Of a stretch of DNA of 64,000 nt, positions 13,058 through 48,765 are shown in pieces (position 1 is the stretch's first letter; the number at the start of each line of letters is the position of its first letter). The notes below the pieces were generated by a model that saw nothing but the letters and a program-made list of their open reading frames with translations, was not told the DNA's origin and did no database searches. The stretch is from the IMG/VR virus record IMGVR_UViG_3300017917_001123, positions 124,001 through 188,000 of that record, one strand, 5' to 3'. A program made the translations under genes and the position numbers.

Positions 13058-13462
13058 ATGGGACGTCCATTAGAAAAAAGACAATTTGGTAATACATCAG
13101 GATCTGGCGAACAGATTCAAGTAACAGCATACATTCCAGCGGCTAACGGCGGTGTCGCAGCCAAAACTGGATACATCAACAGACAAAAGAACGATACACG
13201 TTTTAATGTTACAACAGCCGACGGTACAGGTGTTTGCTCACTAACTACTGGAACTGTGACAGCAGGTTTAATGAGTATTGGCGGAGTTGATTCTGCTGGT
13301 AACAGCTACTTAGTTTCAAAGATTAGCGGACGCACAGCAACCGTTCATCGTGTAGCTGGCGGTTCTAATTATAAATTTGCCGACGGTGAAAAAGCACCTT
13401 GGTTGATTGGTGGAGCAACTCTACCATCAGGTGGCGAATGTATTGATCTAGGAAGTGCTTAA
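13058..13462 (+). CDS. Hypothetical virion protein, 134 aa (candidate capsid decoration protein)
   Basis: Monocistronic late unit right after the capsid gene with strong SD and its own terminator; Gly/Thr-rich beta character. Confidence 0.7.
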   Translation: MGRPLEKRQFGNTSGSGEQIQVTAYIPAANGGVAAKTGYINRQKNDTRFNVTTADGTGVCSLTTGTVTAGLMSIGGVDSAGNSYLVSKISGRTATVHRVAGGSNYKFADGEKAPWLIGGATLPSGGECIDLGSA

Positions 13463-16647: not shown

Positions 16648-19600
16648 ATGGCCGTAGGTCGAATTACAGGTCCGCTCTTAGCAAGCAATTTGTTAAGAGA
16701 CGGAGTAAATTTATCAGTAGAAACTGATCTCTTATACTTAGATGTTCAAACAGGTCGTATTGGTATCAAGACGTCTAGTCCGCAGTATGATTTAGATGTT
16801 AACGGTACAGCAAACATTGATGTATTGCGTGTATCAAATACCTCAACGTTAGGTTTACTAACAGTTACCAAATCCGTCACAAGTGGTACAATTGGATCAA
16901 CACTAGGTCCTATCAACATTGACCCAGCAAATAACGAAAAGATTTATTTAAAAGCCAATACAGAAGTTATTGGTAACTTACATGCCACTGGCGAAATCAC
17001 AGCCGACGGTAACATTCGACTAGGTGATACAACATCAACTGATACACTTAAAGTTGGTGCTGAGATTATTTCTAACCTAATTCCTCAAACACCAAACACT
17101 TACGATATAGGTTCACAAAGCCAAAATTGGCGTGCCGCTTATTTCCAACAATTATTCACAGGCAATCTACATCAGTTTGGCAACACAATTACAAACGTTC
17201 TTCCTCAGAACATTGATATTATTCCTCAAGGCGGAACATTAAACATCTACGGTAATGTTCGCATTTGGGAAGGAACACCTTTAGGTACTGCCCCTCAAAC
17301 TAACAACGTTTTATATGTAACAGAAAATGGCAGTGACACAAACGACGGTTCGGCAATGGACGCCTCTCGTGCTTGCCGTACAATCAGTGGTGCTGTTCGT
17401 AGTCCATTATACAAGCCAGGTACAAGTATTAAAGTTGCTCCTGGCCATTATCTAGAACAAAACCCAATTGAATTAAAACCTTACACATCTGTTATTGGTT
17501 CTGACCTACGTACAACATTTATTGAACCAATCAACAAGACACAAGACGTATTCCATGTTCGTTCTGGTTGCTACATTGCCCAGATGAATATCTTTAACGG
17601 TCGTTCTGGACGTTTCCCAGGAACTGGTTATCTAGCAGATACAAACCGCGGAGCCTACGCAGTTGCGTTCCCACCAAACGGCGACAACGGAGTTCCAGTA
17701 GACGTATTCCAATCTCCATATATTCAAAACTGTACAAACCAATCAGGTCCTTGGTTATATGACGGTACTATGTTTGTACCTAACCAAACAGTTCAAGTTC
17801 CAGAAGGTGTTGGTATCTCGACATACGAAGCTGGTACACAAGAAATTGAAGTAACATTATCTGAAGGTGAAATCTATGTTGGACAGAGCATTAACGGTGC
17901 TCCGCCAAATCAAGGATTCTTCAATGCTCGTACATTGTTATTATCAAACAAGCCGTTTATTCAAGAGCAAGTTGTTGCCTATGTTGACCAACAGTATGGC
18001 GGCCCATTCCAATACAACGCAGTCAAGTGCGCTCGCGACACTGGTCTTATCATTGACGGCCTAGGGTTAGATCTAGTTTACAACTCAACAAGCCAATCAG
18101 TATTCTCTGGTTTACAATATTGGAGCCAAACATCTTCACCGACACAGATTGCTGGTGAAGAAACTACAACAACAAACGCATTTAACTATATTAATAGTAT
18201 TGCTCAATTAGTTGTTCGTGCTCAAGCAGTTTCAACACCATACCAGAATACACTAACACAAGTTACTGCTCTTCCAGCCGGAGCTATTGGCGATGCTAAC
18301 AGAGTATCTTCGTTGTTTACAACTGCTACAAACATTATTGTTGAAGGCACATCTGGTATTAGCGACAAGATTATTTCAAACGGCGCAGTTACTTCTAACA
18401 CAAGTACACAGGCCGCTTACAATCTTCTACAGGCAAACAAAGAATTCTTAAAGGCAGAAGCCATTGCTTGGATTTCTGCTAACTCTCCGACCTTTACTTA
18501 CGACCAAGCAAAGTGTAAGAGAGATGTTGGCTATCTAGTTGACTGTGTATCGTTTGACTTACTACACGGTGGTAACCGTCAAGTAATTCAAGCAGGTACA
18601 TATTACTACGGTTACAGTTCTGTTAACAGCGCAATTCCGGGAGAACAGGCTCAGACAATTCTAGCATACAATTACATGAAGAATGTAATCTCTGCCGTTG
18701 TTCAAAGTCAGAAGCTAACACGCTTCTATCAATCTGAGATTCCTCAAGTACTTGATAATAACAACGCAGGGTCAGCTGCCGCCGCAACGACTATTACTGG
18801 AAATATTGATTTAATTACAAGATTAGTTCGAGTCGGTCCAGAAGGCGCACCAGCATTAGAGCCAATTGGTTTAACACGTTCAGTTGATACTGGTGTGTTA
18901 AATGCCTATGCTCTGTTAACTGCTAACATGGACTTTATTAAGGCAGAAGTTATTGCCTATGTAAACACATTACCTAACTTTGTTTACAACAAAGAGAAGT
19001 GCTACAGAGACGTTGGAATTATTATTGAAAACGTTTCCTTTGATGCGTTAAATGGTGGAAATGAAAAAGCACTTGAAGCAGGCTTGTCTTATTACAACGG
19101 TGTAACAAGTGTAATTCAAGGTCAAGAAACACAAACAGTTGGCGCAATCGAATATATTAAATTCTTAGCAAGAAAAGTTATTCGTAATCAAACTTGCCCA
19201 GACCTATTAAGCGGCCGCGGCGCAGAAAGCCAGCAAATTAACTATGTTTTAACTGGCGGTGGTATCGCTCAACCGGCATTAGATAAAGGCTTTGATCTTA
19301 TCACTGGTATCATTACTAACGGCCCATCTTTTGCTCCTACTTCTTATCCAGGATGCGCTGTCGATCCATACTTGATGAGTGCTGAAGTTCTATTACAAGC
19401 TAATAGAAGTTTCATCCAAGAAGAAATTGTTGAGTTTGTTAATAAGTCTTTCTTAACATTCCCATTCAACACATCTAAATGCCGCCGTGATACTGGTTTA
19501 ATTGTTGACGCAATCGCAATGGATATGATGTATCCCACTGCGTCAGACAGTCAATCAACATTCGCAGGTATCCAATACTGGAAGAACGGAAGCTATACTG

Positions 19601-22600
19601 GCGACATTGAAAAAGAATTAACAACAACAACAAATGCTATTAGCTATCTAAGTAGCCTAGCACAAAAATTAATTCTAAACGATATTTCTGGTCCACGTTA
19701 TCAGACAGCAGTTACACAAAATACAAGCCTTGCGTCTGCTACAGTTTCTGAAGCAGACATAATTGGAACAGATTTAGATCTAGTTATTTCAATTCTAAAT
19801 GATGGAACCGAAGGCATAACTGACAAAGTTATTCCAAACGGTCAACCTCTAACTACCCCTGGTGTAATTAACGCTTACGAAATTTTACAAGCTAACAAAG
19901 CATACATCCAAGCAGAAGTTGTTGCCTACGTTGAAGCAACCAAGACTCCTGGATTTACATACAGCCAAGTAAGTTGCTCGAGAGATGTCGGTTACTTAGT
20001 TGACGCAGTTTCCTTTGACTTATTACATGGCGGTAACCGTCAAGCAATTCAAAGTGGTGTTTACTACTATTCATTTGACGGCCTTGTTAGTGCTATTCCA
20101 GGTGAAACAACTCAAACTGTTTCAGCATACAAACACTTAAAATCAATTCTTGCTAACATCATTACAGGAACAACTGTAACAGAGCGTTACCAAAATGTTA
20201 TTAATCAGAACGTATCTTTAAGTGCTGGAGGAAGTACTCAGGTAACAACCGCACAAGGTTTAGTTGATACAATTATTGATATTATTTTAGTAGGTCCAAG
20301 TGCCGCTCCAGCCGCACAACCATTGAGCCTAACAGAAAGTTCTACAGCATTAACAGTAAATGCGGCAAAGATCATCTCAGCAAACAGAGACTTTATCAAA
20401 GCCGAAATTATTGCTTATATTAATAAGACTTTCCCAAGCTTCAGATACAACAGCGAAAAATGTGCTCGCGATACCGGCTTGTTAGTTGATGCTATAGCAC
20501 AAGATTTATTATTTGAAGGCAATACACAATCAGTATTCTCTGGTGTTCAGTATTGGAAACAAACTGGTTACACTGGTACTATCGCAAATGAATTAACAAC
20601 TACAACTAGCGCAATTAGCTATGTAAGCGACCTTGCTCAAAAAATTGTTAAGAATGTCACAAGCGGACCACGTTATCAGTCAGCAGTTACACAAAACACA
20701 GTTTTACCAGCCGCTACTACAATTCAATCATATAAGATTAGTAAAGAGTTTGAATTAATCTTAGAATTAATCAATGATGGATTACTAGGAGTTACTGATA
20801 AGATTGAACCTAACAGTTTAGTAGCAAGCGGCGATTCAAATGTCATTGCCGCATTTGATTTACTACAAGCTAATAAAGCATACATCCAAGCAGAAGCTGT
20901 GGCTTTTGTTGAATCAACTAAGACACCTGGCTTTACTTACGACCAAGCCAAGTGTTCTCGAGATGTTGGCTACATGATTGATAGCGTATGTATTGACTTA
21001 CTATACGGCGGTAACCGTCAAGCAATTCAAAGTGGTGTTTACTATTGGGATGCTTCAACTGGCGTTACCGCAATTCCGGGCGAAATTACTGAAACCCTTG
21101 ATGCTTACAACTATCTAAAGACTATTGTTGAAAAAGTAATCTTAGGTATACCAGCACCAAGAAGCCAAAGCAACAAGATTGTTCAAGTAACAAACTTGCC
21201 AACAGCGTCTGACACAGAAGTAACCTTATTAAGCAACAAAATTAATAAGATTACAAACATTATTCAAAACGGACCATCTGTTGTAACAGTTAAAGAACCA
21301 ATTAGCTTAGTTCGTACATCCGACGCAAACAAGAAACGTGCTTACGATTTGCTAATGGCAAACAGAGAGTTTATTGCTAGCGAAATTGTTTCTTACATCA
21401 ACGAAAAGTACAATGGAATTTCTTATTCTTACAACAAGGTTAAGTGTTTCCGTGATACTGGGTTGATTGTTGATAGTATTGTTACTGACTTAGGTTGGGG
21501 AACAAACGGATTTACACAAAGCAACTTTGCCGGTTTACAGTACTGGAACCAAAACGGTTATACTGGAGACATCCAACGAGAGCTAACAACCACAACTAAC
21601 GCAATCAACTATCTAAGCACACTTGCTCAGAAAATTGTTCAAAATGATTTAACAGGTACTCGTTATCAGTTTACACTAACTCAAAACATAAGTCTACCAG
21701 CCGCAACACCAATTGAAGCATCGGCTATTGCTTTAGACTTTAGCACCGTTACAAACATCTTGTTAAACGGAACAACTGGTGTAACAGATATTATTGTTTC
21801 AAATGGTATTACTGCTCTAAGTTCAGACGCACAACACGCTTACGATTTATTACAGGCAAACAAGGCATACATGCAGGCCGAAGTTATTGCTTGGGTCGAA
21901 GCAAACAAAGGCACTGGATTTGTTTATGATAGTACTAAGTGTTCAAGAGACACTGGCCTAATTGTTGATGCTGTGGTACAAGACTTATTGTTTGGCGGAA
22001 CAAGTCAAACAACATTTGCTGGTATTCAATATTGGAACCAAAATGGTTACGTAGGAACCATCGCAAGTGAGTTAACAACTACAACTAACGCAATTTCTTA
22101 TGTAAGCAGTCTGGCACAAAAAGTAATTCAGAACGATACACTAGGAACAAGATATCAGTCAACTGTAACACAAGTTACAAATCTTGATCCAGGTACCGTT
22201 ACAGAAGCGACTCGCGTTGCCAGCGACTTTACTGTAATTTTAGATATTTTACAAAATGGTACTGCTGGGGTAAGCGATAAGATTATTCCAAACGGTATCG
22301 ACGCAGACATTAATACTAATGTTCAAAATGCCTTTGCTGTTCTTCAAGCAAACAAGGCATACATTCAAACAGAAGCAGTAGCATTTGTTGAATCAACTAA
22401 GACACCTGGCTTTGTATATGATCAAGCTAAGTGCTATAGAGATGTTGGTTACATGATTGATAGCATCTGTATCGACTTGCTATATGGCGGAAATCGTCAA
22501 GCAATTCAAAGCGGGGTTTACTATTATGGTTACAACGGAAGTTCAAGTGCAATTGCTGGAGAACAAACAGAAACTATCGCCGCATACAATCATATCAAGG

Positions 22601-25600
22601 CAATCATAACCTCGATTGTTACTGGCGTAGAAATTACTAATCCTTATCAGCTAGCTGTTCCGCAGGTAAGAACACTATCTGCCGGTACAAGCGCAGAAGT
22701 AACAACTTCTCAAGGATTAATTGATGTTATTACAAATATCATTCAGAACGGCCCAACCGTTGCGGCAGCTCCTGCCCCATTAGGATTAACAAAGAGCTCA
22801 AACGCAAACGTTCAAAACGCGGCCGCAATGTTACTTGCTAACAAAGATTTTATTGTAGCAGAAACAATCGCTTATATTGATTCTACATACGCAAAAGGTT
22901 TTGATTACGATCAGGCTAAGTGCTATCGAGACATGGGTTATCTAATTGATAGTATCAGTTACGATATTCTATACGGCGGCAACAGACAAGCAGTCAACAG
23001 TGGTGTTTACTACTACGGATTTGATGCTTCAGCAAGTGCTGTAGCAAACGAGCAAGTACAAACCGCCGCGGCCTATAACAGATTAAAAGAAATTATTCCT
23101 TTAATCATTACTAACCAGCCAGTAGCACCGACAGACGGTAATGTAACAGAACAACAGTTCAACACATTTGGTTCAAATGAAGAAGTTAGCCAATTAACTT
23201 CTCAGATGATTCAGTTAATGGTTGACATTATCCAAGACGGCCCAAGTGCGGCGATAGCAAAAACTCCAATCGGTCTAACAGAGAATACTGATGCTAATAT
23301 CCAAAAAGCAATGGTACTATTACGTTTAAACAGAGAGTTTATCCAAAACGAAATCATTGCTTGGGTTGACGCAACATACAAGAAGGGCTACTTTAATTAC
23401 AGCCAAGAGAAGTGCTACAGAGATGTCGGCCTAATCGTTGATGCTCTATCTGGCGACCTATTAATTGGCGGAAACTTAAAGACAATCGAAGCAGGTGTTA
23501 CTTATTGGCTTGGCGGCGTTAACGCAGTTGCTAACGAAATACCTCAACAAAATGCTTCTTTAGATTATCTAAAGACCGTTGTTGCTAAGGTTGTATCTAA
23601 TCAAGAATTAGCTTCTATTAGCGGAGCACGTCAGATTATTAATCCTTACTTTGCTGGCGGACAATACACAACAGAAAACTTAAACAGATTAATTGACATT
23701 CTTAAGACAGTTATTTCTAAAGGTCCTGCTTTTGCTCCACAAGGGTATCAAGGAAGTGGTGCTTTCGCAACAAGTAACTCGTCGGTTGATTACATCCAAC
23801 CAGCAAGTACAGTTCTTGAGGTAACTGATTTAGGCGGATATCGTTACAGAGTTTATCTAAGCAAGCCTATCCTAGGCCCAGGAAATAACGCAACATTGTT
23901 CTTTGGACAAACATCAGTTTATCCTTTACTAGATAAGAATGTTCCAGATCGTTGGAATCAACGACGCATTGACCCATACGGTTCTGTAGGCGGTGCCCTA
24001 ATTGACGGCGCAGTTGTTTCTAAGCGTTCTCCAATTCAGTCGTTTGTTTTTGACGCATATACTCAACTTAACCAAGGCGGTATTGGAATTAAGATTACAA
24101 ACAGCGGTTACGCACAGCTAGTATCGGTGTTCACAATCTTCTGCGGAACATCTGTTATTGTAGAGAACGGCGGTATTTGTTCTATTACCAACTCTAACGC
24201 GAACTTTGGTGACTTCTGTCTAGTTGCTAAGGGTTACAGTAAGCGCGAGTTCTTCGGTGAAGTTTATAACCCACCAGTTCTACCTTACTATCCAAATGGA
24301 TTCTTCCCGCAGACACAGATTGTTGAAGTGTTCTGTCCAGACCCAGAAAACAGACCGCACATTGGTCAGATTATGGAAGTTGTTCCTCCTGAGGGATATA
24401 CTAACGCACAAGGTCTACCAGGATTCTTATCTGCGGCAATCAACACAAGCACATTAACAACTGGATCAATTAGCATAAGTGGAATTGATACAGAAGGTGT
24501 TGTTATTGGTCAAAACATTTATGTTCGCGACCAGTACGGTTCATACACTGATATTAACGGAACACGTTATGTTCCAGAAGGTACTATTGTAACAGATGTA
24601 TCATTTAAGACAATTACACTAAGCGAAAGTATCACATCGGGCGGTGGAGAACTTGGAAATCCAAACTACTTTACAATGTATGTTGCTGGTAATGCTTATT
24701 ACACAGTTCGTTCAAGCGAACTTGCTCCGGATCCAATTCCTCCTGGAACTTTCCGATTAGGCCCAAGCGCAACAGAACAAGGTAACGATCAAGGCGATGA
24801 AGAAATTCAAGCACTTCAATACCTAAACAATCTAGCAAATAAAGTTGTTAGCAATCAGCTAATTAGTGCGGCTCAAACAACATCAACTCAAGTAACTAAC
24901 TTGACATTAAGCGGTGGTGACCAAGCAACCATTAGAATGGGTGAATTGTTTACAACTCTACAAAGCATTATTACAAATGGTCTAGATGCGGCACCTGCTA
25001 TTAAGAAAGAAGGTGTTGTTCCGCCTGGAGCAGATAGCGCAAGTTCTTTACTAACTGCGAATACTCCGTTCTTACAAGAAGAAATCATAAAATATATTAA
25101 CAGTCAATACTTTGTATATGATCATGATCTATGCCGTAGAGACTTAGGTTACATTTTAGATGGCTTTGGTTGGGACGTTTTATTCCAATCTAACTACCAA
25201 GCTATTAAGTGCGGTAATGCTTATCTAAGAAATGTACCTGGAAGCAAGTATGTTTTAGAAAATGAAAAAGCACAAACAGTCGATGCTATTGATAGAATCG
25301 CTGACTTAACAAACGGTCTAAGTGGTATTAATACTGTTACTGGCGCTATTTCTGTTATTAACTTAGACGGTATCTACATCCAAAATATTATCAACGGCGC
25401 AGGCGCACCAGCATATAGTATGCCTAACCCGGCAGGCCTTGATAACGGCATAGCAAGTGCTAAGAGTTTAATTTTAGACAACTTAGCTTACATTAAAGAA
25501 GAAGTTATTGGATGGATCGATGCTACATATCCAACATTCACTTACGATCAAATTAAATGTAAGAGAGACATTGGTTTAGTATTAGACGGTGTAAACTGGG

Positions 25601-27423
25601 ATATCCTTTTAGGAACCAACTACCGTAGTATTAAATCCGGTCAAGCATACTTCCGTGGAAACGCAGAAGCATTATTAGCAAATGAAAAAACTCAGACAAT
25701 TGCCGCGTTTGGTTTTGTAAAAGATTACTTGTTAAATCTTTCAGTTGTTCAAGCAAGCACAACTGCTACACAAACTGTGACAAATGACTTTAATAATATC
25801 ATTGCTATTCTAAACGGAGGCATTGCGGCAAGCCCAACAGTAACATATACAATTCCGCCAGGCACAGTAACAGGCTTCTCAAGTGCAAGCCAGTTGTTAC
25901 AAGCAAACCGCGCATTTATTATGGCTGAGGTAGAAAATTACATTCATGTAACTTATCCAAGTCATGTATATGATCGAGCTAAGTGCGAAAGAGATGTTGG
26001 TTTAATTTTAGATGCTTTAATCTATGATTTAACTTACGGCGGAAACTCAATGACTGTTGATGCGGCTCTTCAATACTTTGATAACGCAAATAACAATGTT
26101 CGTGTAAATCCTAACGAAGTACCTGAAACAGTTGCTGGTATTAATTACATTAACACTATTTGCCAACGTATTATTCAAAACTTGGCTCCTGTAGTAAGCT
26201 ATCAAGTAGCTGTAACTCAAACATTCAATCCAAGTTGGCCACAAGGTTCTGTAGCTGGACCTACTGTTGCTGATCTTGTAAGCGATATCGCAAACATTGT
26301 TCAGAACGGTCCGTCTGCTACTCCGTTGATTACTGAGCCATCATATGCTTGGGCAAGTCCAAGTCAGATTCTGGCAAGAACAGAAATTGATGATTCTAAG
26401 GAACTGATTGCTACTGAAACTATTGCGTTCATTAATGATGAATATACAGTATTCAGTTACGATAAAGCAACATGCCGTCGCGATATGGATTATGTAATTC
26501 ATAGCATGATCTATGATTTAATTTACGGCGGAAATTGGCAGACAGTTGATGCTGGTTTAAATTATTGGAAAGGAGCTACTAGCTTAATTCCGGGTGAACA
26601 AGATCAAACAGTTGGCGCATTTACCTACATGCTTCAGTTAATGAAACGTGTTTCTCTAAATCAAGCACCAACACAGAGCTATCAGAACATTTACACACAA
26701 TTCTTTAATCCGTTATTGCTTGATGGACAAAATGCTCATGGTAAGTTAGAGGCGTTAACTGTTATTCTAAATAACATTATTCAAAACGGAACAGGCGTTG
26801 CTCCAGCAATTGAGTATCCTGGCACAACAGGATATAGTTCAACATTATTAAATGTTAAGAACATTATCGAAACACAAAAGACAAACTTGGTCAACCAGGT
26901 AATTACGTATATTGATAACAAGTATAACGGTTTTGAATATAACCAAGCGTTGTGTAAGCGTGACGTAGGGTTTGTAGTAGAAGCAATTGCCGCAGACTTA
27001 GTAAGTGGTGGAAACTACAACACAGTCTTATGTGGTCAGAGCTACTACGCAAGAGAAGGTACACACCACTATGTGACTATCGAAGATAACGTAGCAGATG
27101 CTACACTATTCCCAGATAAGGCACATATTAATTTCTATCGTCGTTCTTACATGTCTGCTTCTGGTTACTTGTTTGAATATGTAGGTGCTGGTTCTAACTA
27201 CGGTGCTCTACCTTATGTAGGACGATTTGATCCTAACCAAGAAAGAGAAACTGTACAGTTGAATAACGGTAAGGTATTCTTTACAAGTACTGACCAAAAC
27301 GGTGACTTCCGAATTGGTCCAGGATTGGTAATTAGCCAGGCAACTGGTGTGTTATCAGGACGTACATTTACGAAGTCATTGTTTGCTAACTTGACACCGT
27401 TCATCTTAGCAATTGAAGGATAA
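16648..27423 (+). CDS. Giant virion/appendage protein, 3591 aa: fibre-type N-terminus, split beta-helix, 17 helical C-x-R-D (phycobiliprotein-like) repeats, C-terminal fibre-type domain
   Basis: Uninterrupted ORF with strong SD; LYVTENGSDTNDG...IKVAPGHYLE beta-helix start; repeat motif F-x-Y-x3-K-C-x-R-D-x-G-x3-D-x4-D-x3-GGN. Confidence 0.9.
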   Translation: MAVGRITGPLLASNLLRDGVNLSVETDLLYLDVQTGRIGIKTSSPQYDLDVNGTANIDVLRVSNTSTLGLLTVTKSVTSGTIGSTLGPINIDPANNEKIYLKANTEVIGNLHATGEITADGNIRLGDTTSTDTLKVGAEIISNLIPQTPNTYDIGSQSQNWRAAYFQQLFTGNLHQFGNTITNVLPQNIDIIPQGGTLNIYGNVRIWEGTPLGTAPQTNNVLYVTENGSDTNDGSAMDASRACRTISGAVRSPLYKPGTSIKVAPGHYLEQNPIELKPYTSVIGSDLRTTFIEPINKTQDVFHVRSGCYIAQMNIFNGRSGRFPGTGYLADTNRGAYAVAFPPNGDNGVPVDVFQSPYIQNCTNQSGPWLYDGTMFVPNQTVQVPEGVGISTYEAGTQEIEVTLSEGEIYVGQSINGAPPNQGFFNARTLLLSNKPFIQEQVVAYVDQQYGGPFQYNAVKCARDTGLIIDGLGLDLVYNSTSQSVFSGLQYWSQTSSPTQIAGEETTTTNAFNYINSIAQLVVRAQAVSTPYQNTLTQVTALPAGAIGDANRVSSLFTTATNIIVEGTSGISDKIISNGAVTSNTSTQAAYNLLQANKEFLKAEAIAWISANSPTFTYDQAKCKRDVGYLVDCVSFDLLHGGNRQVIQAGTYYYGYSSVNSAIPGEQAQTILAYNYMKNVISAVVQSQKLTRFYQSEIPQVLDNNNAGSAAAATTITGNIDLITRLVRVGPEGAPALEPIGLTRSVDTGVLNAYALLTANMDFIKAEVIAYVNTLPNFVYNKEKCYRDVGIIIENVSFDALNGGNEKALEAGLSYYNGVTSVIQGQETQTVGAIEYIKFLARKVIRNQTCPDLLSGRGAESQQINYVLTGGGIAQPALDKGFDLITGIITNGPSFAPTSYPGCAVDPYLMSAEVLLQANRSFIQEEIVEFVNKSFLTFPFNTSKCRRDTGLIVDAIAMDMMYPTASDSQSTFAGIQYWKNGSYTGDIEKELTTTTNAISYLSSLAQKLILNDISGPRYQTAVTQNTSLASATVSEADIIGTDLDLVISILNDGTEGITDKVIPNGQPLTTPGVINAYEILQANKAYIQAEVVAYVEATKTPGFTYSQVSCSRDVGYLVDAVSFDLLHGGNRQAIQSGVYYYSFDGLVSAIPGETTQTVSAYKHLKSILANIITGTTVTERYQNVINQNVSLSAGGSTQVTTAQGLVDTIIDIILVGPSAAPAAQPLSLTESSTALTVNAAKIISANRDFIKAEIIAYINKTFPSFRYNSEKCARDTGLLVDAIAQDLLFEGNTQSVFSGVQYWKQTGYTGTIANELTTTTSAISYVSDLAQKIVKNVTSGPRYQSAVTQNTVLPAATTIQSYKISKEFELILELINDGLLGVTDKIEPNSLVASGDSNVIAAFDLLQANKAYIQAEAVAFVESTKTPGFTYDQAKCSRDVGYMIDSVCIDLLYGGNRQAIQSGVYYWDASTGVTAIPGEITETLDAYNYLKTIVEKVILGIPAPRSQSNKIVQVTNLPTASDTEVTLLSNKINKITNIIQNGPSVVTVKEPISLVRTSDANKKRAYDLLMANREFIASEIVSYINEKYNGISYSYNKVKCFRDTGLIVDSIVTDLGWGTNGFTQSNFAGLQYWNQNGYTGDIQRELTTTTNAINYLSTLAQKIVQNDLTGTRYQFTLTQNISLPAATPIEASAIALDFSTVTNILLNGTTGVTDIIVSNGITALSSDAQHAYDLLQANKAYMQAEVIAWVEANKGTGFVYDSTKCSRDTGLIVDAVVQDLLFGGTSQTTFAGIQYWNQNGYVGTIASELTTTTNAISYVSSLAQKVIQNDTLGTRYQSTVTQVTNLDPGTVTEATRVASDFTVILDILQNGTAGVSDKIIPNGIDADINTNVQNAFAVLQANKAYIQTEAVAFVESTKTPGFVYDQAKCYRDVGYMIDSICIDLLYGGNRQAIQSGVYYYGYNGSSSAIAGEQTETIAAYNHIKAIITSIVTGVEITNPYQLAVPQVRTLSAGTSAEVTTSQGLIDVITNIIQNGPTVAAAPAPLGLTKSSNANVQNAAAMLLANKDFIVAETIAYIDSTYAKGFDYDQAKCYRDMGYLIDSISYDILYGGNRQAVNSGVYYYGFDASASAVANEQVQTAAAYNRLKEIIPLIITNQPVAPTDGNVTEQQFNTFGSNEEVSQLTSQMIQLMVDIIQDGPSAAIAKTPIGLTENTDANIQKAMVLLRLNREFIQNEIIAWVDATYKKGYFNYSQEKCYRDVGLIVDALSGDLLIGGNLKTIEAGVTYWLGGVNAVANEIPQQNASLDYLKTVVAKVVSNQELASISGARQIINPYFAGGQYTTENLNRLIDILKTVISKGPAFAPQGYQGSGAFATSNSSVDYIQPASTVLEVTDLGGYRYRVYLSKPILGPGNNATLFFGQTSVYPLLDKNVPDRWNQRRIDPYGSVGGALIDGAVVSKRSPIQSFVFDAYTQLNQGGIGIKITNSGYAQLVSVFTIFCGTSVIVENGGICSITNSNANFGDFCLVAKGYSKREFFGEVYNPPVLPYYPNGFFPQTQIVEVFCPDPENRPHIGQIMEVVPPEGYTNAQGLPGFLSAAINTSTLTTGSISISGIDTEGVVIGQNIYVRDQYGSYTDINGTRYVPEGTIVTDVSFKTITLSESITSGGGELGNPNYFTMYVAGNAYYTVRSSELAPDPIPPGTFRLGPSATEQGNDQGDEEIQALQYLNNLANKVVSNQLISAAQTTSTQVTNLTLSGGDQATIRMGELFTTLQSIITNGLDAAPAIKKEGVVPPGADSASSLLTANTPFLQEEIIKYINSQYFVYDHDLCRRDLGYILDGFGWDVLFQSNYQAIKCGNAYLRNVPGSKYVLENEKAQTVDAIDRIADLTNGLSGINTVTGAISVINLDGIYIQNIINGAGAPAYSMPNPAGLDNGIASAKSLILDNLAYIKEEVIGWIDATYPTFTYDQIKCKRDIGLVLDGVNWDILLGTNYRSIKSGQAYFRGNAEALLANEKTQTIAAFGFVKDYLLNLSVVQASTTATQTVTNDFNNIIAILNGGIAASPTVTYTIPPGTVTGFSSASQLLQANRAFIMAEVENYIHVTYPSHVYDRAKCERDVGLILDALIYDLTYGGNSMTVDAALQYFDNANNNVRVNPNEVPETVAGINYINTICQRIIQNLAPVVSYQVAVTQTFNPSWPQGSVAGPTVADLVSDIANIVQNGPSATPLITEPSYAWASPSQILARTEIDDSKELIATETIAFINDEYTVFSYDKATCRRDMDYVIHSMIYDLIYGGNWQTVDAGLNYWKGATSLIPGEQDQTVGAFTYMLQLMKRVSLNQAPTQSYQNIYTQFFNPLLLDGQNAHGKLEALTVILNNIIQNGTGVAPAIEYPGTTGYSSTLLNVKNIIETQKTNLVNQVITYIDNKYNGFEYNQALCKRDVGFVVEAIAADLVSGGNYNTVLCGQSYYAREGTHHYVTIEDNVADATLFPDKAHINFYRRSYMSASGYLFEYVGAGSNYGALPYVGRFDPNQERETVQLNNGKVFFTSTDQNGDFRIGPGLVISQATGVLSGRTFTKSLFANLTPFILAIEG
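17915..27060 (+). repeat. Protein-level tandem repeat array: 12 + 5 copies of a ~142-165-aa helical unit with invariant C-x-R-D
   Basis: Cys codons at 18028, 18514, 19000, 19480, 19975, 20461, 20953, 21445, 21940, 22432, 22921, 23413, then 25132, 25558, 25984, 26473, 26953. Confidence 0.93.
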
Positions 27424-27438
27424 TAAGGAAAATATAAA

Positions 27439-27825
27439 ATGGCACTAATTCCATTAAACACGTTTAAAACTAAAACATTTGTTTTAACAACTACAACTAA
27501 CGCAACGGTTTATACTGCTCCAGTAGGAGTAACTTCGATTGTTTTGATGGCCAACGTTGCGAACGTTAGTACAAATACAAATGCTAGCGTTACGTTTGCT
27601 CACCATAGAAATCTTCCAGTGCTAGCAGATGCTCAAGGAAACGGCGGCCAACCCGGCAACGTAACGACTGAGCTAGTTAAGAATTTTGAAATTCCTCCAA
27701 GCGATGCTGGAAACATGCTAGTAGGAAAAATGATTGTTGAAAGTCTAGACAGCATTAGAGCATACGCAACAGTTGAAGGCACACTAAAACTTACAATGAG
27801 CATTCTAGAAACAGCTAACCAATAA
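27439..27825 (+). CDS. Small beta-sandwich-like virion protein, 128 aa
   Basis: VYTAPVGVTSIVLMANVAN...IPPSDA...KMIVESLDSI; related to 15502-15831; SD AAGGA. Confidence 0.75.
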   Translation: MALIPLNTFKTKTFVLTTTTNATVYTAPVGVTSIVLMANVANVSTNTNASVTFAHHRNLPVLADAQGNGGQPGNVTTELVKNFEIPPSDAGNMLVGKMIVESLDSIRAYATVEGTLKLTMSILETANQ

Positions 27826-34728: not shown

Positions 34729-37700
34729 AAACCCGAGTTTCCCTCTCTTTGGTAAATAAAGCATAAAGCAATATTTTGCCATACGTGGAGAGGGAAACTA
34801 ATGGCTTCGTATAACGACGATTTTATAGTCAAGAACGGCCTCATTGTCAGGGCCAACAACTTATCAAATTACCAATCAACTAGCACAACAACCGGTGCGA
34901 TAGTAACACCCGGCGGAGTGGGCATTGGCGGTGATGTAAACATTGGAGGAAGACTCAATGTTGATACATCTGCTACGCTAGCTGAATTATCTGTCGAAGG
35001 CATTACGAAAATCCTTTCAACAGCAACAAATACCGCAACAATAACTCCCGATGGCAATGCTCTACAAGTGTTTGGCGGAATCTACGCCGAAAACATTAAT
35101 TTATCTGGCATTGGTTTAATCAAAGGTTCTCGAATCTTAACGGTTGCTGAAGGCTTCCAGGGCGGTATCATCGCCGAACCGTTAATTATTAACACAACAA
35201 CTAATTCTACAAGTACCACAACTGGTGCTTTAGTTACTCCTGGCGGTATTGGTGTTGGCAGTGATGTTCATATCGGTGGCAGCGTTTGGACTACCGGAAC
35301 ATCGTATGTAACTGGTAGTATTTTTGGCGGCGAAAAACATGTACTAAACACAGTACAGTTTAACGGTAACAGCTACGTTTCAGCAAAAGTAGTTCAAAAT
35401 GGTTATACTGCTACTGTAACCTTAACTAACACCGGTGTAACAAGCCTTGTTGCTGGAACAGGTATTAGTGTCAGTACATCTACAGGAACCGTAACAGTAG
35501 GTAATACTGGTGTTCTAAGTATTATTTCGGGCGGTGGCGAGCTTCAAGTTGACCAAGCAACCGGAAACGTAACATTAACTGTTGCTAGTACTCTACAAGA
35601 CGTTGTCCTACGTGGCAATCAAACTGACCAAACTATTGCGATTAACAACCCAACCGATGTTTTAACTACATCAGGAAACGCACTAGATGTATTAGGAAGT
35701 ATTGGCGCCTACAGAATTAACGTAGTAACAACTTCATACGTTGCTGGCGCACAAATTGTTACAACTGGAACTATTAACCAGTATATTGGCGGAACAATTA
35801 CTCAGCCGCTAAGAATTGCTAACACAACAAGTTCTATTAATACACAAACTGGCGCACTAGTAGTCGATGGCGGTGTCGGTATTGGTGAAAATTTAAATGT
35901 TGGCAAGAATTTTACACTAGGCGGAGACGCAGTAATTTACGGTGGATTGACTGTTGTCGGAAGTTACACAACTGTATTAGTTAACTCTACACAAACAGTT
36001 ATCAGCGATCCTGCTATTGATTTAGGCGCAGGATTTAACGGTGCTCCTCTCGAAATAAACGACGGTTTAGACAGAGGTCTTGTACTTCACTTTAACACTG
36101 GAACTTCTGTACTACACGAAGGTCACGCATTCTTAGGTCGGCAAGCAACTAGCGGTGAATTAGTCTTTTTAACAAATCTAACAACAGGAACATCACACTC
36201 AGTTCCGAATCCTTATTCTGGAGATTGGGGCAATGTAAGATTTGGCCAGCTACGCTTAACTAGTAGCGAAAACGCATCGAGTACAACAACTGGTGCTCTA
36301 GTAACTGTTGGTGGTATTGGTGTCGGCGGCGATGTATATGCCACAAGAGTGTTTGATGGCGGAGCAAGAGTTGTTAGTGTTGTTAATATTACAACAGGCT
36401 CTGGATTAGCAATCACAAGTTCTGTAAACACAGGACCTAATGTAAGTTACGCAATAACAAACACAGGTGTTCTTTCTGTAACAACTGGTAATGGTATTTT
36501 AATTACAGGCGATGCTCAAAATCCTGTAGTACAAAACATTGGTGTTGTTAATTTACAAGTATCAACAGATCCAACTGAAAACGATTTAAGCGTTTCTTCA
36601 AACGGAATTAGAACATTCTTTGTTGGAAACACAAGTACATTACAAACTGTAACTGCTCGCGGAAATGAAACTACTTCTGAAATTATTATTCTAAATCAGA
36701 CAACAAGTACCGAAGTAACTTCAACTAACGCATTACAGGTACTTGGCGGTATTAGTGCTAAGACATTATTAATTACAGACAAGGCATATTTAAATGGTGC
36801 TGAAGTTGTTACTTCTGCTACAATTAATGCTTTCTCTGGTGGTACAATTAACAACAGCTTAAAGATTAACTCAGGTGAAACATCAACAAGCACAAGTTCT
36901 GGTGCGTTAGTTGTTAACGGAGGTTTAGGTGTAACAGATAACATGAATATCTGGAACACAATTAAGCAATGGAACACAAATACAACTGGTATTGTTGCTT
37001 ACGGTACTTCTGAATTTCACAATACTCTTTTTGCTAACACACTATCTGCTCTTTCAACAAATCTAAACATTGTAAGTCAAGGAACTGGTTCAGTTTATAT
37101 CAACGGTGTTAATCTGTTAGCATATGATGCCAACGTGTGGTATGTATCTGAAGCAGGAAGTGACTCTAGCGATGGTCGAAGAATTGCCAGCGCATTCAAA
37201 ACTATTAAACACGCTCTAAGTGTTGCCCAGCCAAGTGATGTTGTCTTTATTGAAGCAGGCACATACGAGGAAGTATGGCCATTAACAGTCCCACAAGGTG
37301 TAACTGTTAAGGGTGCTGGTGTTCGTGCTACTATTGTTAAGCCGACTGTTGGTACAAATACACAGAACGGTTTCCAATTAAATGGCGAAACAACAGTCAG
37401 CGACCTTTGTGTTGAAGGTTTCTTCAAACCAGGTTACGCATTTACATTCGCTACTGGCGCAAAGATTACAACAAAGAGTCCATACGTTGAACGTGTAAGT
37501 GTTATTACACGCGGTAGCTCAACAAGCTCAACAGATCCTTATGGATTTGCGGCAGCTGATGCGGGTAACGGTGCTAAACTTGATGCTGGTGTATTAGATC
37601 CAACATCATTAGAACCAGCAATGTTATGGAACGAGGTAACATTCATTGTTCCAAACGCAACTGGTTGGTATATGACCAACGGTGCTCGTGCTGAAATTCT

Positions 37701-40700
37701 AAACGGCTTCTCATATTTTGCTGACAAGGCAATTCACGCAGTAGCAGGTACAACAGGTTACGGTGGTGTAGGTAAGACAAGACTTAAACTTGAAAATATC
37801 AACGGCGTGTTTAAGTCTGGTGAAACAATTACTTACGAAGATCCAAATAATAACATCCTTGCCCAAGGTACTATTTCAAGCACAGCAAGCGGATACATCT
37901 TTATCACTGGTCCAAGCTACGGCTTTGAAACAATCACTGATCGTGCTGGTAAGACTGTAACAACGTATGGCGACGCAGTACAAAGTACAATCCAGAAGAA
38001 GTTTGGTACAACTGCCGGTAAGTTTGACGGCAACGGTGATTACCTAGAAGTACTAAGCGACACAGACTTAGTGCTAAATGGTCAAGACTACACTATTGAA
38101 GCATGGGTGTATCTAAGCGGACTAGGAAAAACACAACGTATTGCTCGTAAAGGTGTTTCAACTCCGGCGGCATATGAGTTAGCAATTACAAGCTCGAACG
38201 TAGTTGCCGCGTACCATGGCGGAACAACTATTGTTGGTACTACAGCGTTAACAACAGGTCAATGGTACCATGTTGCTCTGTCTAGACAGAATTCGTCAAA
38301 TACAATTAAATTATATCTAAACGGTACATTAGAAGCTTCAAGTACAAGTGCTAGCGGTGGAGTATCAAATACAGATCCGTTAAGTATCGGTGGCTGGGCA
38401 TCAGTGGCAGCAGATTCCTTAAACGGTTACATGGATGACTTCCGCGTTAGTAACAACTATCGCTATCCAAGCAACTTTACTGCTCCAACAACAGAATTAA
38501 TTTCTGATGCCAATACAGTTCTGTTACTAAACATGAATGGTGGTAACGGTGTTACTGGGTTTATTGATACTGCTGAAGGTTCACAAGACATTTATTCAAG
38601 TGGCGGAGCAACTGCTACAAGAATTGCCCTAGCCGATTATCATCAGTTTGGTGCTGAATTACGTTGTATTGGTTCTGCGGCAGTATTTGGTAATAGCGGT
38701 GTTGTTGCTGACGGTACTGGTACTAACTTAAAGATCATTGCCTTCAACATGAGCCACATTGGTTCGGGCGGTGACTTGTCAGATGACGATAGTCTACACA
38801 ACCAAGCCAACGAAGTTATTATGGTTAACAATGGTAAGGTTTATTACCAGACTGTTGACCACTTAGGCGACTTCCGTGTAGGCGAGCAATTCATTGTTAA
38901 CCAACGTACAGGTAATGTAAGTTTTGGTAACGCACAAGTTAACTTGAGCGGATTAAATCAATTAACAATTACCGACGGTACAAATAACGCAACAATTCTT
39001 CCACAAAGTATTAGTGTTGGTAATTTATCTTTAGCAGGAAATACAATTTCCTCATTGAGCGGAAACCTAACACTTGATCCGGCAGGAACATTAACAACAG
39101 TTAACAGCGACCTAGCAGTCAATGGTTCATTCTCTGTTCAAACACTAGCAGTTCCTGGAGTTGATCAATCAACTTCAACATTAACTGGAGCAATGACTGT
39201 TGCAGGTGGAGCAGGCATTGGCGGCAACTTAAATGTTGGCGGAACATTTACAACTTATGTAACAGCAAGCTCTACATCAACAATTGCCAATAACGCAATC
39301 CAAGCAGTTAATGGTGGCGTTGGTGCGAAAACAATCTACATTGAAGAAGACGGTTGGATCGGAACTAACCGCATTGTTACAACAGCAACTATTGGAGCAA
39401 GTTTAGGTGGTATTGTTCCAAACGCAATTCATATTACAAATACCGACGCCAACTTTGGAAATACAACTTCCGGTGCTCTAATTGTTGACGGTGGTGCGGC
39501 TGTTGCTGGAAACTTAACAGTCGGTGGCGACTTAACATTATTAGGCGGCGGTTCTGTATTGACTAATGTTGCGGTAACTACTGATGCCTATATTGGGGCA
39601 AGCGTAGTTAAGGCAGGTACAACTGCTACAATTAACATTGTTAATTTGGGTGTTCAAAGCCTAACAGCAGGATCTGGTATTGCTGTGTCTGCTTCAACTG
39701 GCACAGTGACAATCGATTCGACAGATACCTTAGGGGACGTAACATCACGTGGTGCTACAACTGCTGACGCAATCTCATTAACAAGTACTGCTTTAAACAG
39801 TTCAACTATTGCTAACAACGCTCTTTCAGTTAGCGGCGGGATTGGTGCTGATAGTTTATACATTGCTCGCTTCGGTTGGTTAGCAGGTAGCGAAATTGTT
39901 ACAACTGCTACACTAGGACAGGCATTTAACAGCTCAACACAAGTTACTGGACAGTTTAACATTACCAACACATCAAGCAACGCCTTCTATGTTGCTGGTG
40001 GAGGTACAGTTGGCGGAAACTTTACAATTGGTGGAAACTTAACTGTAAACGGAACTGTAACTTCAGTAGACAGTAACTCAGTTAACATTGGTAACAAAGT
40101 TGTTTATCTATCAACACTAACTGGTAGTGCGGCTCTTTCTGCAGGTTCTGGTATTATTGTCGGTAAGGATGATAATAATCCAACAACTGACTGGGCAACA
40201 TGGATTTATGACGGCGGCGAGCCGGGCTTCTGGACAACTACAAACGGCATCAAGCCGATGCGTGATGATCTAGAATTTGGAACTGTCAACGGATATTGGT
40301 GGAAGACCGGCGCAATCAAAGACTTGTACTTTGATCAAGCAGTATCTACAAGCACATCATTTAACACAGCAACAGTAGCAGGAAATGCTCTTCGCCTACC
40401 AAACGGCGGTATTGGTGCTAAGACTCTACACTTAACAGATGAGGGTTGGATTGCTGGTGCTAAGATTGTTACTTCTGCTAACTTTAATCAGTTTGCTACA
40501 GACTTTGATGGCGGAACAATCAGCCAAGCTCTGGTTATTAATAACAATACTCCGGCAACAAATACAACAACTGGTGCGTTAGAAGTATTAGGTGGCGCCG
40601 GAATTGGACAAGCACTATATGTTGGCAAGAGTGTTTATATTAACGAAACATTAGACGTAACAGGAAGTGCTTTAATTCAAAGTGTAACAACATCGACAGC

Positions 40701-46700: not shown

Positions 46701-47760
46701 TGGCACAGGTGGCGGTGGCGGTGGCGGTGGATCGTCAACACTAACAGAATACATTTCTGTAACAAGCTCAACCGTAGCACTATCAACCACAACTGGCGCA
46801 GTTCGTGTAACAGGTGGTGTTGGTATTGGTAAGAACTTATTTGTTGCTGGTCCAATAACAGTTGGCGGATCTACATCGTTTATTGACACAAGTGCCCAAA
46901 TTCAAGCTAATGGCGGAATTCAAGCATCCGGTTCTGTTGTTGGTAAAGACATGTATGCTTCTGGTGGTAACCTACTAGTTCAAAGCTCAGACTTTACACA
47001 GGCTAACTGGGCTAAGTTTAACAGCACAGTACAAGCAGGTTCTACAATTAGCCCAGACGGTACACTAAATGGTACTAAGTTAATCGAAACTGCGGCAACT
47101 GGTGGTCACTACTTCCAGCAGACAATTAGTCAAACTGGTCCGATTACATTTAGCGCATTCTTAAAAGCAGGTGAACGTACATTTGCTATCTTGAACGCTA
47201 CTGTAGCAGGTCAACCACATGCGGCTTGGTTCAACTTAACAACAGGTGCTCCAGCAACTAAGCAGGAAAGCCTATACAAAGTTGATAGTCGTTGCGAACT
47301 TCTACCATACGGAGCAAGTTCAGGATGGTATCGTTGCTCAATCACTGTGTGGGCTCCAACAAGTGCTACAACAACTGCTGTAGGTATCTATACAGCATTG
47401 GGCAGTGAAAGTGTAATTACTGGTACATTAAGTTCTTATACAGGTACAGCTGGTAACGGTTTATATGTATATGGAGCACAAGCTGAGCCAGGTTACTATC
47501 CAGGTGACTATTTTGCTACTGCGGCATCAACAGTTGCTCCAACAGCTAATAGCTATGTAGGTGGAAGTCTATATGTTGCTAACACAGGTACAGTTGGTGG
47601 TTCACCGATTGTAACTTCAGCTAACCTAATGACATACTGGGGTGGCACAAGTGCTAACACCTTACAGATGACAAATACAACTAACGCAACAAGTACACAA
47701 ACTGGTGCGTTACAAGTTGTAGGTGGTGTTGGCATTGGCAAAGATGTTTGGATCGGCGGT
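28900..47760 (+). repeat. Dispersed protein-level fibre repeat (S/T)-x-T-T-G-A-L-x-V-x-G-G-x-G-I-G, dozens of copies across the 2296- and 4437-aa proteins
   Basis: Visible throughout both translations; a few copies also occur in the 818-aa fibre. Exact count not made. Confidence 0.85.
34736..34799 (+). promoter_or_regulatory. SD-sequestering 12-bp inverted repeat with a late promoter in its loop
   Basis: AGTTTCCCTCTC (34736-34747) is the exact reverse complement of GAGAGGGAAACT (34788-34799), which overlaps the SD-like GGAGAGGG; TAAATA at 34753-34758 lies between the arms. Confidence 0.8.
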
Positions 47761-48117: not shown

Positions 48118-48765
48118 ATGATTGTTAACGGACCATATGTACCACTTACTGGATTAGTTTTAATGGCTGATCCTAGAAATAGTAAATGCTATTCTGGAGC
48201 AGGTACTGCTGCCTTTAATCAAGTTGATAACGGATCACTAACTTTATCGTCTATTGGTTATAACAGCGGATATTGGACAAACGCGGCCGCAGGAGCAGTA
48301 GTATCGGGCACATATAACTTATCGTTAAGTTCGGGGTACACAGTTATTCAGTGGTTAAATTTAACCACAACCAGCGGAGGATTCTTTAGTTATACTTCGG
48401 GGTCCAACGCAATTAACTTATATGCTGGCGGCTCTACCCAAATGCGCTGGGAATCTTATCTAACAGGCGGTGACCTAAACAGTAACACTTTAATTCCTAC
48501 AGGAACCTGGGCAATGTGGGCAGGAAGTTTTAGCGGAACAGGATCTGCGGGTGGCTCAGGAACAAGTAAGATATACTACAACGGAAACGTGGATGCTACT
48601 GGAACCTTAGCTGGAACAGCATCAAATTCCGCTACATTCCAAATTGGAGTTCATAGCGGTCCGATGAACGGTAGTATTGGGCCTACGTTATTTTATAACA
48701 GAGCACTTTCTGATACAGAAGTTAGAAACGTATTCCAGGCTTACCGCAGAAGTTTTGGATTATAA
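48118..48765 (+). CDS. LamG/concanavalin A-like lectin domain protein, 215 aa
   Basis: GLVLMADPRNSKCYSG N-terminus; YTVIQW, KIYYNG, LFYNRALSDTEV..VF C-terminal LamG signature. Confidence 0.8.
   Translation: MIVNGPYVPLTGLVLMADPRNSKCYSGAGTAAFNQVDNGSLTLSSIGYNSGYWTNAAAGAVVSGTYNLSLSSGYTVIQWLNLTTTSGGFFSYTSGSNAINLYAGGSTQMRWESYLTGGDLNSNTLIPTGTWAMWAGSFSGTGSAGGSGTSKIYYNGNVDATGTLAGTASNSATFQIGVHSGPMNGSIGPTLFYNRALSDTEVRNVFQAYRRSFGL

Follow-up and report, generated by a model that had tools for sequence, protein, structure and literature searches.

A giant putative phage fibre protein with 17 phycobiliprotein-like domains suggests that some phage particles may carry bilin pigments

Background

Could a phage particle carry light-absorbing pigments? 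This question is raised by a 64-kb stretch of DNA (hereafter, the window) from the 331,570-bp phage record IMGVR_UViG_3300017917_001123, in which an uninterrupted open reading frame (ORF) of 3,591 amino acids (aa), identified from the ORF list and its translation at positions 16648-27423 of the plus strand, encodes a putative virion fibre protein containing 17 repeats that resemble phycobiliproteins (PBPs). An initial annotation, made from the sequence of the window alone, described this protein as a virion appendage whose repeats would bind tetrapyrroles covalently, and proposed that such repeats could be the acceptors of bilins (linear tetrapyrroles) made by phages.

A bilin-attachment site on the virion would be a testable candidate answer to two puzzles, namely, the presence of cpeT and bilin genes in phages and a light-dependent adsorption, in S-PM2, P-HM1 and P-HM2, that is independent of photosynthesis. 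Why phages, including those of Prochlorococcus, which lacks phycobilisomes, carry cpeT and bilin genes has been called unclear (PMC2984593), and a 2024 paper refers to the purpose of hemO and pcyX in phages as "still enigmatic", mentioning an acceptor of the type of the bilin biosynthesis-associated globins (BBAGs) only as a possibility (PMC11480375). As described below, the repeats are homologous to PBPs, and this array in a putative phage fibre suggests that some phage particles may carry bilin pigments.

Seventeen repeats homologous to phycobiliproteins

The giant protein contains exactly 17 copies of the motif C-x-R-D, compared to 0.045 expected from composition and 0.044 from shuffling, with a maximum of 2 copies in 20,000 shuffles. 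The Cys residues of the motif are located at aa 461, 623, 785, 945, 1110, 1272, 1436, 1600, 1765, 1929, 2092 and 2256 and, after a gap of 573 aa, at aa 2829, 2971, 3113, 3276 and 3436; thus, the spacing is 160-165 aa among the first 12 copies, and 142, 142, 163 and 160 aa among the others. Only 0.9% of all residues are Cys (32 in total), 17 of which belong to the motif. A hidden Markov model (HMM) of the repeat delimits 17 units at aa 383-3512, that is, nucleotides (nt) 17794-27183, and does not detect the repeat in other ORFs of the window. In the 17-way alignment (by its own numbering), C83, R85, D86, D97 and Y113 are invariant. The copy number and spacing given in the initial annotation therefore stand, and every string quoted there occurs in the protein (repeat 2 contains DQAKCKRDVGYLVDCVSFDLLHGGN, both repeat 1 and repeat 6 contain KCARD, and ILAYNYMK is found as well). 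In contrast, the F-x-Y prefix that it ascribed to every copy is strict in 14 of the 17 only, the exceptions being repeat 4 (F-x-F), repeat 8 (Y-x-Y) and repeat 15 (H-x-Y), and the coordinates that it assigned to the array, 17915-27060, fall within the actual repeat span without covering its full extent.

Are these repeats indeed related to PBPs? Searched with the whole giant protein, the Pfam family PF00502 scores 37.0 bits (E-value (E) 4.1e-9; gathering score, 22.2 bits) over 3 stretches, the best of which places aa 618-690, in repeat 2, on profile positions 71-141. Among the single repeats, 5 of the 17 match PF00502 (E<=1), which is the sole Pfam family matching more than one repeat. A profile of the 17 repeats compared to all PDB sequences retrieves phycocyanin alpha chains first (E 6e-4), with profile positions 81-104 aligned in register to phycocyanin alpha residues 81-104. 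When 300 diverse phage repeats were compared, using hhalign, to 69 CpcA and 61 CpcB genes from cyanobacterial genomes, the CpcA set matched with a probability of 94% (E 1.3e-7) across helices A/B to E, a result subject to the caveat that this set was retrieved via its own motif and has low diversity; in this alignment, KCxRDvGy of the phage repeats is set on KCARDIGY of CpcA. Finally, the AlphaFold model of repeat 2 (predicted local distance difference test (pLDDT), 87.5; predicted template modelling score, 0.84) is all-helical, with seven helical segments, of which six are >=12 residues long, and the top 33 matches in a Foldseek search of the PDB are all PBPs (probability up to 0.99; template modelling (TM) score 0.33-0.51; E ~0.1). 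The model of the short repeat 14 displays the same helix pattern; given its low confidence (pLDDT 58.5), it was kept out of the fold search.

Because these four methods agree, the resemblance reflects homology to PBPs rather than a chance motif, which bears out the relationship suggested in the initial annotation, including the globin-like fold expected of a single repeat. The repeats belong, in a diverged form, to the bilin-binding globin superfamily, in which the phycocyanin alpha type is their closest relative; as aligned, all 17 keep Cys-x-Arg-Asp in the register of Cys84/Arg86/Asp87, the triad that forms the site of bilin attachment and coordination in PBPs. A low-complexity or coiled-coil repeat with an accidental C-x-R-D and a compositional resemblance to PBPs could be invoked given that the single-repeat Pfam scores stay under the gathering score and that the Foldseek E is only ~0.1. 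However, the gap between 0.044 sites in shuffles and 17 observed, the convergence of four independent methods on the same family and register, and the status of PF00502 as the only family found in more than one repeat leave such an artefact a negligible probability, and for practical purposes we consider it excluded.

How do the phage domains compare to the known members of the superfamily? With CpcA and other PBPs, they share the globin-like all-helical fold, a unit of ~160 residues and the K-C-x-R-D-x-G-Y ... G-G pattern in the same register as Cys84/Arg86/Asp87/Gly102-103, and weaker similarity extends into helices B and G. Unlike PBPs, which form alpha/beta heterodimers and trimeric phycobilisome discs, the phage protein is a tandem array of 17 copies fused in a single 3,591-aa chain, without separate alpha and beta subunits, and its gene belongs to a phage structural module rather than to a phycobilisome or antenna operon of cyanobacteria or plastids. 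The phage repeats also differ from CpcA by the extra invariant D98 and Y114 and, as indicated by a TM score of only ~0.5, by their termini, with one long N-terminal helix and no clear H helix.

The core-membrane linker ApcE, which attaches its bilin autocatalytically and whose bilin-binding domain (4xxi) is among the Foldseek matches of repeat 2, likewise places a PBP-type domain inside a very large multi-domain scaffold polypeptide. In ApcE, however, one PBP domain is followed by unrelated linker repeats and the attachment Cys is located elsewhere, whereas in the phage protein the PBP-like domain itself is the repeat and the Cys84-type site is kept. The BBAGs described by Rockwell, Martin and Lagarias in 2023 are PBP paralogues outside light harvesting, with unknown function (PMC10151467). 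CXRD marks the attachment Cys in PBPs as well as in BBAG-1 and BBAG-3, and the latter two attach bilins without a lyase (PMC10151467). Compared by description, not by sequence, BBAGs differ from the phage repeats in being single-domain bacterial proteins encoded in clusters with heme oxygenase (HO) and pre-PcyA genes, whereas the repeats form a tandem array in a virion context, and neither the window nor 55 related loci, which are all structural neighbourhoods and add up to 1.08 Mb, showed a cluster with HO and ferredoxin-dependent bilin reductase genes.

A candidate bilin-attachment site in a large protein family

What, if anything, do these domains bind? We favour, with a probability of about 45%, the explanation that a bilin is thioether-linked to each domain, its attachment in the infected cell being either autocatalytic or lyase-mediated. 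One linear tetrapyrrole would occupy a pocket along helix E of each domain, thioether-linked to the Cys, with the Asp holding the pyrrole nitrogens and the Arg holding the propionate. Attachment would proceed as in the CXRD-bearing BBAG globins or, if catalyzed, would involve a host or phage lyase during assembly. More speculatively, the pigment array might make the fibre light-responsive and gate adsorption; alternatively, it could contribute to the rigidity or protection of the shaft, or act as a tetrapyrrole bait for a host receptor. If bilins are indeed bound, viruses would be added to the distribution of the bilin-binding globin family, with as many as 37 domains arrayed in tandem on one chain, an architecture without precedent, and, should the domains attach bilins by themselves, they would be a potential source of modular fluorescent tags.

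The repeat family is large. A word-index search identified >1,129 homologues, many of which carry a precomputed PF00502 label, and an exhaustive profile search of 1.84 billion cluster representatives retrieved 1,531 clusters at E<=1e-3. The number of repeats per protein ranges from 4 to 37, the maximum being reached in metagenome proteins of 5,984-6,382 aa. Full-text literature searches found no paper on phycobiliprotein-like domains in phage structural proteins, so that, as far as these searches show, the initial annotation was right in knowing of no description of this system.

Across 3,417 repeats from 266 proteins, CxRD is present in 96%, and the key residues are conserved at 96.9% (C), 97.5% (R), 99.0% (D87), 99.6% (D98) and 98.6% (Y114). 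Poor conservation of the Cys among homologues, which the initial annotation named as evidence that would count against its proposal, is thus not what we observe. Fifteen positions are conserved at >=80%, and nine of these are polar or bear a hydroxyl or thiol, a trait not usually seen in small helical packing units. A domain that binds no pigment would leave unexplained both this composition and the retention of the chromophore triad at 97-99% while the domain as a whole drifts to 16-55% identity, the range observed among the repeats of the giant protein.

A polar pocket might, on the other hand, accommodate a ligand other than a bilin, namely, heme or another cyclic tetrapyrrole, a metal on the acidic stripe of helix E, or a host surface molecule, in which case the fibre would not be a biliprotein and the domains would function in receptor recognition or as a nutrient-mimicking bait. 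Globin folds do bind heme, the acidic residues D87, D93 (conserved at 84%) and D98 follow, at least approximately, an i, i+7, i+11 spacing on helix E (the actual offsets are +6 and +11), and the window phage may infect a non-cyanobacterial host. Nevertheless, there is no His for heme ligation among the highly conserved columns, the motif and its register match the bilin site and not the heme site, and the receptor-binding parts of fibres are usually variable tips rather than a 17-fold conserved shaft. Taken together, these considerations make another ligand improbable.

Cyanophage homologues, cpeT and light-dependent adsorption

Which phages encode this repeat? In a set of 50,697 isolate phage records, megablast with the giant gene produced no match; in further searches, the window query matched 130 records and a query with the cyanophage repeat matched 353, all from cyanophages. 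We count this distribution in favour of bilin attachment because cyanophage hosts make bilins and lyases; if the domains are free of pigment, it requires a separate explanation, such as inheritance.

Five CxRD copies are present in S-PM2 p091 ("tail fiber protein"), two in P-HM2 gp7, one of which reads YDQAKCARD, and three in ACG-2014j gp028, together with degenerate SVDD and CLDD copies; P-HM1, for its part, is represented by a tblastn match to the repeat in gp7. These giant cyanophage proteins (PHROGs 4527, 5342 and 701) belong to the same CxRD repeat family as the protein from the window, and their annotations, such as tail fibre-like protein, short tail fibre or gp7 baseplate wedge, assign them to the virion structure without mentioning a relationship to PBPs. 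They are also the top fold matches in BFVD, where the closest viral structures bear names such as "tail protein" and "tail fiber-like protein". Unlike the protein from the window, they contain only 2-6 repeats, interspersed with other domains and in some copies degenerate, and they come from cyanophages of 170-200 kb, as opposed to a 332-kb phage with a GAP32/Rak2-type capsid.

In four cyanophages representing four genera (ACG-2014j, locus L003:9099-22086; Syn1; S-H9-2; S-RSM4), cpeT is located 0.3-1.7 kb upstream of the giant repeat gene, on the same strand, and the identity among the respective CpeT proteins falls to 36%. An initial assignment of adjacency was downgraded to proximity, given that genes intervene in three of the four genera, where only tRNAs, a 2OG-Fe(II) oxygenase gene or an HNH gene separate cpeT from the giant gene. 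The 2OG-Fe(II) oxygenase gene is immediately upstream of the giant repeat gene in Syn1 (L306:1573-2145) and S-H9-2 (L307:2807-3403). In S-PM2, P-HM1/2, S-WAM1 and S-H38, cpeT and the repeat gene are far apart. Because cyanophage genomes are collinear, we take the proximity as moderate evidence only. Work by Gasper and colleagues, published in the Journal of Biological Chemistry in 2017, reportedly found that the phage CpeT binds phycoerythrobilin tightly without transferring it to the host beta subunit, which would leave the acceptor of this protein open.

Adsorption offers another point of comparison. P-HM1 and P-HM2 fail to adsorb without light, adsorption of S-PM2 is light-dependent but independent of photosynthesis, and P-SSM2 and P-SSP7 adsorb in the dark (PMC6628666). 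No repeat was found in P-SSP7 or, as detailed below, in P-SSM2, so that the presence of the repeat and light-dependent adsorption are concordant in 5 of 5 phages, P-HM1 being scored by its tblastn match only. It is conceivable, although in our estimate unlikely, that cyanomyoviruses and related jumbo phages possess a virion biliprotein photoreceptor formed by the tandem PBP-type domains of their baseplate and fibre proteins, chromophorylated in the infected cell by self-attachment or by the phage CpeT, in which absorbed light would switch the fibres to an adsorption-competent state. If this were the case, both light-dependent adsorption and part of the reason why phages carry cpeT and bilin-synthesis genes would be explained.

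Pigment supply and the case for a pigment-free shaft

Several lines of evidence weigh against bilin attachment, the first of which concerns the supply of pigment. Pfam scans of essentially all window ORFs >=100 aa detected no heme oxygenase, bilin reductase or lyase, and phmmer searches with the HO and PebS of P-SSM2 and two phage CpeT proteins found none in the window or in the 55 related loci, with a working positive control and with the limitation that the window is part of a 332-kb genome, ~80% of which these negatives on pigment genes leave out. The PsbA of P-SSM2, used as a query in the same manner, likewise had no match in these sequences. Thus, of the companion genes proposed in the initial annotation (ho1/hemO, pcyA/pebS/pcyX, cpcS and cpeT), none was encountered in the window or the related loci, and neither was a gene for a lyase of the E/F type. 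Genes for ho1 and of the pcyX-like type do occur in large freshwater phages (bioRxiv 10.1101/2020.02.13.942896), with no connection to the window phage established.

Conversely, genes for a PebS-type reductase (PSSM2_058) and for a heme oxygenase (PSSM2_291) are both present in P-SSM2, and yet searches with three HMMs, covering 250,000 of the 252,401 bp of NC_006883, detected no repeat. Because this phage has pebS and ho1 but lacks the repeat, the repeats are not the sole reason for bilin synthesis by phages, and the suggestion that they are the acceptors of phage-made bilins cannot be general. The heme oxygenase gene of P-SSM2 precedes a tail-fibre gene cluster (PSSM2_293-301), lying two genes upstream of it.

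Other observations point in the same direction. With respect to homology, the match of single repeats to PF00502 is marginal and below the cut-off (at best, 17.5 bits, E 0.004), and hhalign yields no significant match to the 61 CpcB sequences. With respect to conservation, the best-conserved D98 and Y114 align to no Asp or Tyr in CpcA, the Cys shows the lowest conservation among the five key residues, and some cyanophage copies read SVDD or CLDD, the retention of which implies that the fold does not need the Cys. The proximity of cpeT may be inherited synteny, and T-type lyases normally serve Cys155 rather than Cys84. The correlation with adsorption is based on n=5, including the near-identical P-HM1 and P-HM2. 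Finally, the closest relatives of the capsid protein (~70% identity) are found in phages of heterotrophic proteobacteria, namely, GAP32-type jumbo phages, Vibrio phage 2.275.O and Sinorhizobium phage Phosso.

Much of this evidence would be accounted for if the repeat were a pigment-free structural module, that is, a globin bead derived from a PBP, captured probably from a cyanobacterial host lineage and amplified for long fibre shafts that bind no tetrapyrrole, with C, R, D, D98 and Y114 kept for folding, packing or post-lysis disulfides. The specificity of the invariant D98 and Y114 to the phage family, the persistence of repeats without Cys or Arg, the absence of bilin and lyase genes near the gene in 56 loci and the heterotrophic hosts of the capsid relatives are all compatible with such a module, as is the plasticity of the repeat number, which is expected of a unit that sets the length of a shaft; in addition, literature searches found no report of pigmented phage particles. 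This explanation, the main alternative to bilin attachment, is a real possibility, weakened by the failure to account for the conserved triad, the polar composition of the conserved positions and the restriction to cyanophages among the isolates discussed above. D98 and Y114 themselves could be either extra pigment contacts, if bilins are bound, or a polar network that replaces the pigment. Even if free of pigment, the repeat would still be a clear case of a host antenna fold reused as a building block of a phage fibre.

Organization of the giant protein

The domains are arranged in the giant protein as follows (window coordinates, strand, description and, in parentheses, evidence).

16648..27423, plus strand: giant ORF, 3,591 aa, putative virion fibre protein (no internal stop; PHROGs; PF00502)
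16648..17793, plus strand: N-terminal non-repeat region, aa 1-382 (outside the repeat HMM envelopes)
17794..18267, plus strand: PBP-like repeat 1, subtype B, CARD at nt 18028-18039 (repeat HMM, independent E-value (i-E) 2e-53; motif)
18274..18750, plus strand: PBP-like repeat 2, subtype A, CKRD at nt 18514-18525 (HMM, i-E 8e-59; AlphaFold, Foldseek)
18760..19209, plus strand: PBP-like repeat 3, CYRD at nt 19000-19011 (HMM, motif)
19243..19725, plus strand: PBP-like repeat 4, subtype B, CRRD at nt 19480-19491 (HMM, motif)
19729..20211, plus strand: PBP-like repeat 5, subtype A, CSRD at nt 19975-19986 (HMM, motif)
20218..20700, plus strand: PBP-like repeat 6, subtype B, CARD at nt 20461-20472 (HMM, motif)
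20707..21189, plus strand: PBP-like repeat 7, subtype A, CSRD at nt 20953-20964 (HMM, motif)
21196..21687, plus strand: PBP-like repeat 8, subtype B, CFRD at nt 21445-21456 (HMM, motif)
21694..22179, plus strand: PBP-like repeat 9, intermediate between A and B, CSRD at nt 21940-21951 (HMM, motif)
22186..22668, plus strand: PBP-like repeat 10, subtype A, CYRD at nt 22432-22443 (HMM, motif)
22675..23157, plus strand: PBP-like repeat 11, subtype A, CYRD at nt 22921-22932 (HMM, motif)
23173..23619, plus strand: PBP-like repeat 12, CYRD at nt 23413-23424 (HMM, motif)
23620..24903, plus strand: central non-repeat region, aa 2325-2752, 4 Cys (between repeats 12 and 13)
24904..25314, plus strand: PBP-like repeat 13, short (142-aa period), CRRD at nt 25132-25143 (HMM, motif)
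25333..25740, plus strand: PBP-like repeat 14, short, CKRD at nt 25558-25569 (HMM, motif)
25744..26223, plus strand: PBP-like repeat 15, CERD at nt 25984-25995 (HMM, motif)
26230..26703, plus strand: PBP-like repeat 16, CRRD at nt 26473-26484 (HMM, motif)
26710..27183, plus strand: PBP-like repeat 17, most divergent, CKRD at nt 26953-26964 (HMM, motif)
27184..27423, plus strand: C-terminal tail (its match to the C-termini of tail-fibre PHROGs includes the end of repeat 17)
27439..27825, plus strand: 128-aa ORF immediately downstream of the giant gene (phrog_1276)

Two subtypes can be distinguished among the repeats, A (repeats 2, 5, 7, 10 and 11) and B (repeats 1, 4, 6, 8 and, as an intermediate, 9), with 44-55% identity in the core of each subtype (lower for repeats 1 and 11) and 25-33% between A and B. 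The subtypes alternate in repeats 4-8, an arrangement loosely reminiscent of alpha/beta pairing; a strict alternation was rejected as it is valid for these repeats only.

Pfam and PDB sequence searches with the N-terminal region yielded no match, and the same holds for the central region. The latter, which includes the best stretch of the match to PHROG 5342 (aa 2465-2532), is flanked by weak pieces of the repeat HMM, one spanning HMM positions 5-44 (aa 2336-2377; i-E 2.1) and the other HMM positions 126-162 (aa 2714-2749; i-E 0.2). Judging by these flanking matches, the central region is possibly an insert of ~335 aa that replaces the CxRD core of a split 18th repeat. At the C-terminus, phrog_17885 and phrog_3442 match aa 3492-3590 through to the ends of their profiles.

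Genomic context

Where in the phage genome does the giant gene lie? The window is the structural module of a jumbo phage of the T4 superfamily. It encodes, in this order, an SbcC-like nuclease, a segE-like endonuclease, a baseplate protein, the portal, the prohead protease, the scaffold and the major capsid protein, followed by five small ORFs, the giant ORF, the 128-aa ORF, ORFs of 2,296 aa and 4,437 aa and a fibre with an S74-type C-terminus; gp15, gp13-like and tail sheath genes are located further downstream. The giant protein matches the tail-fibre and virion-structural PHROGs 4527, 5342, 701 and 17885 with E of 3e-171, 1e-157, 4e-103 and 1.5e-51, respectively. The virion appendage proposed in the initial annotation fits both these matches and the position within the structural module and, as read from its sequence, the giant gene encodes a fibre-type structural protein with a predicted shaft of 17 globin-like, PBP-homologous domains.

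Relatives on contigs of 120-374 kb share this gene order, in which the 128-aa ORF comes directly after the giant gene. In the related loci L001, L006/L007 and L008, this small ORF follows the giant gene at 62-92% identity, compared to 38-52% for the giant protein itself, and might encode an assembly partner of the giant protein. It has no Pfam match, and a relationship to the small ORFs downstream of the cyanophage giant genes was rejected for lack of homology. As for the host, there are no tRNA genes in the window, and the S74-type C-terminal domain of the fibre (818-aa ORF) provides no clue because its matches come from phages of many hosts.

Together with the 2,296-aa and 4,437-aa ORFs, the giant gene is part of a run of three giant structural genes spanning ~31.5 kb. 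A Laminin_G_3 (concanavalin-like lectin) domain is present both in the 4,437-aa ORF (34801-48114) and in the adjoining 215-aa ORF (48118-48765). Just after the capsid gene, a 134-aa ORF (13058-13462) shows a faint match to the heme-binding beta-barrel of THAP4/nitrobindin; bilin lyases are likewise lipocalin-like barrels. At E 0.014, below the cut-off, we dismissed this match as probably due to chance. The segE-type gene (1649-2074, E 3e-33), which encodes a GIY-YIG homing endonuclease, is located between the SbcC-like nuclease gene and the baseplate and portal genes. Finally, a 565-aa ORF with a C-terminal Methyltransf_24 domain (54049-55746) is encoded inside the structural module, adjoining the convergently oriented gp15-like and neck genes.

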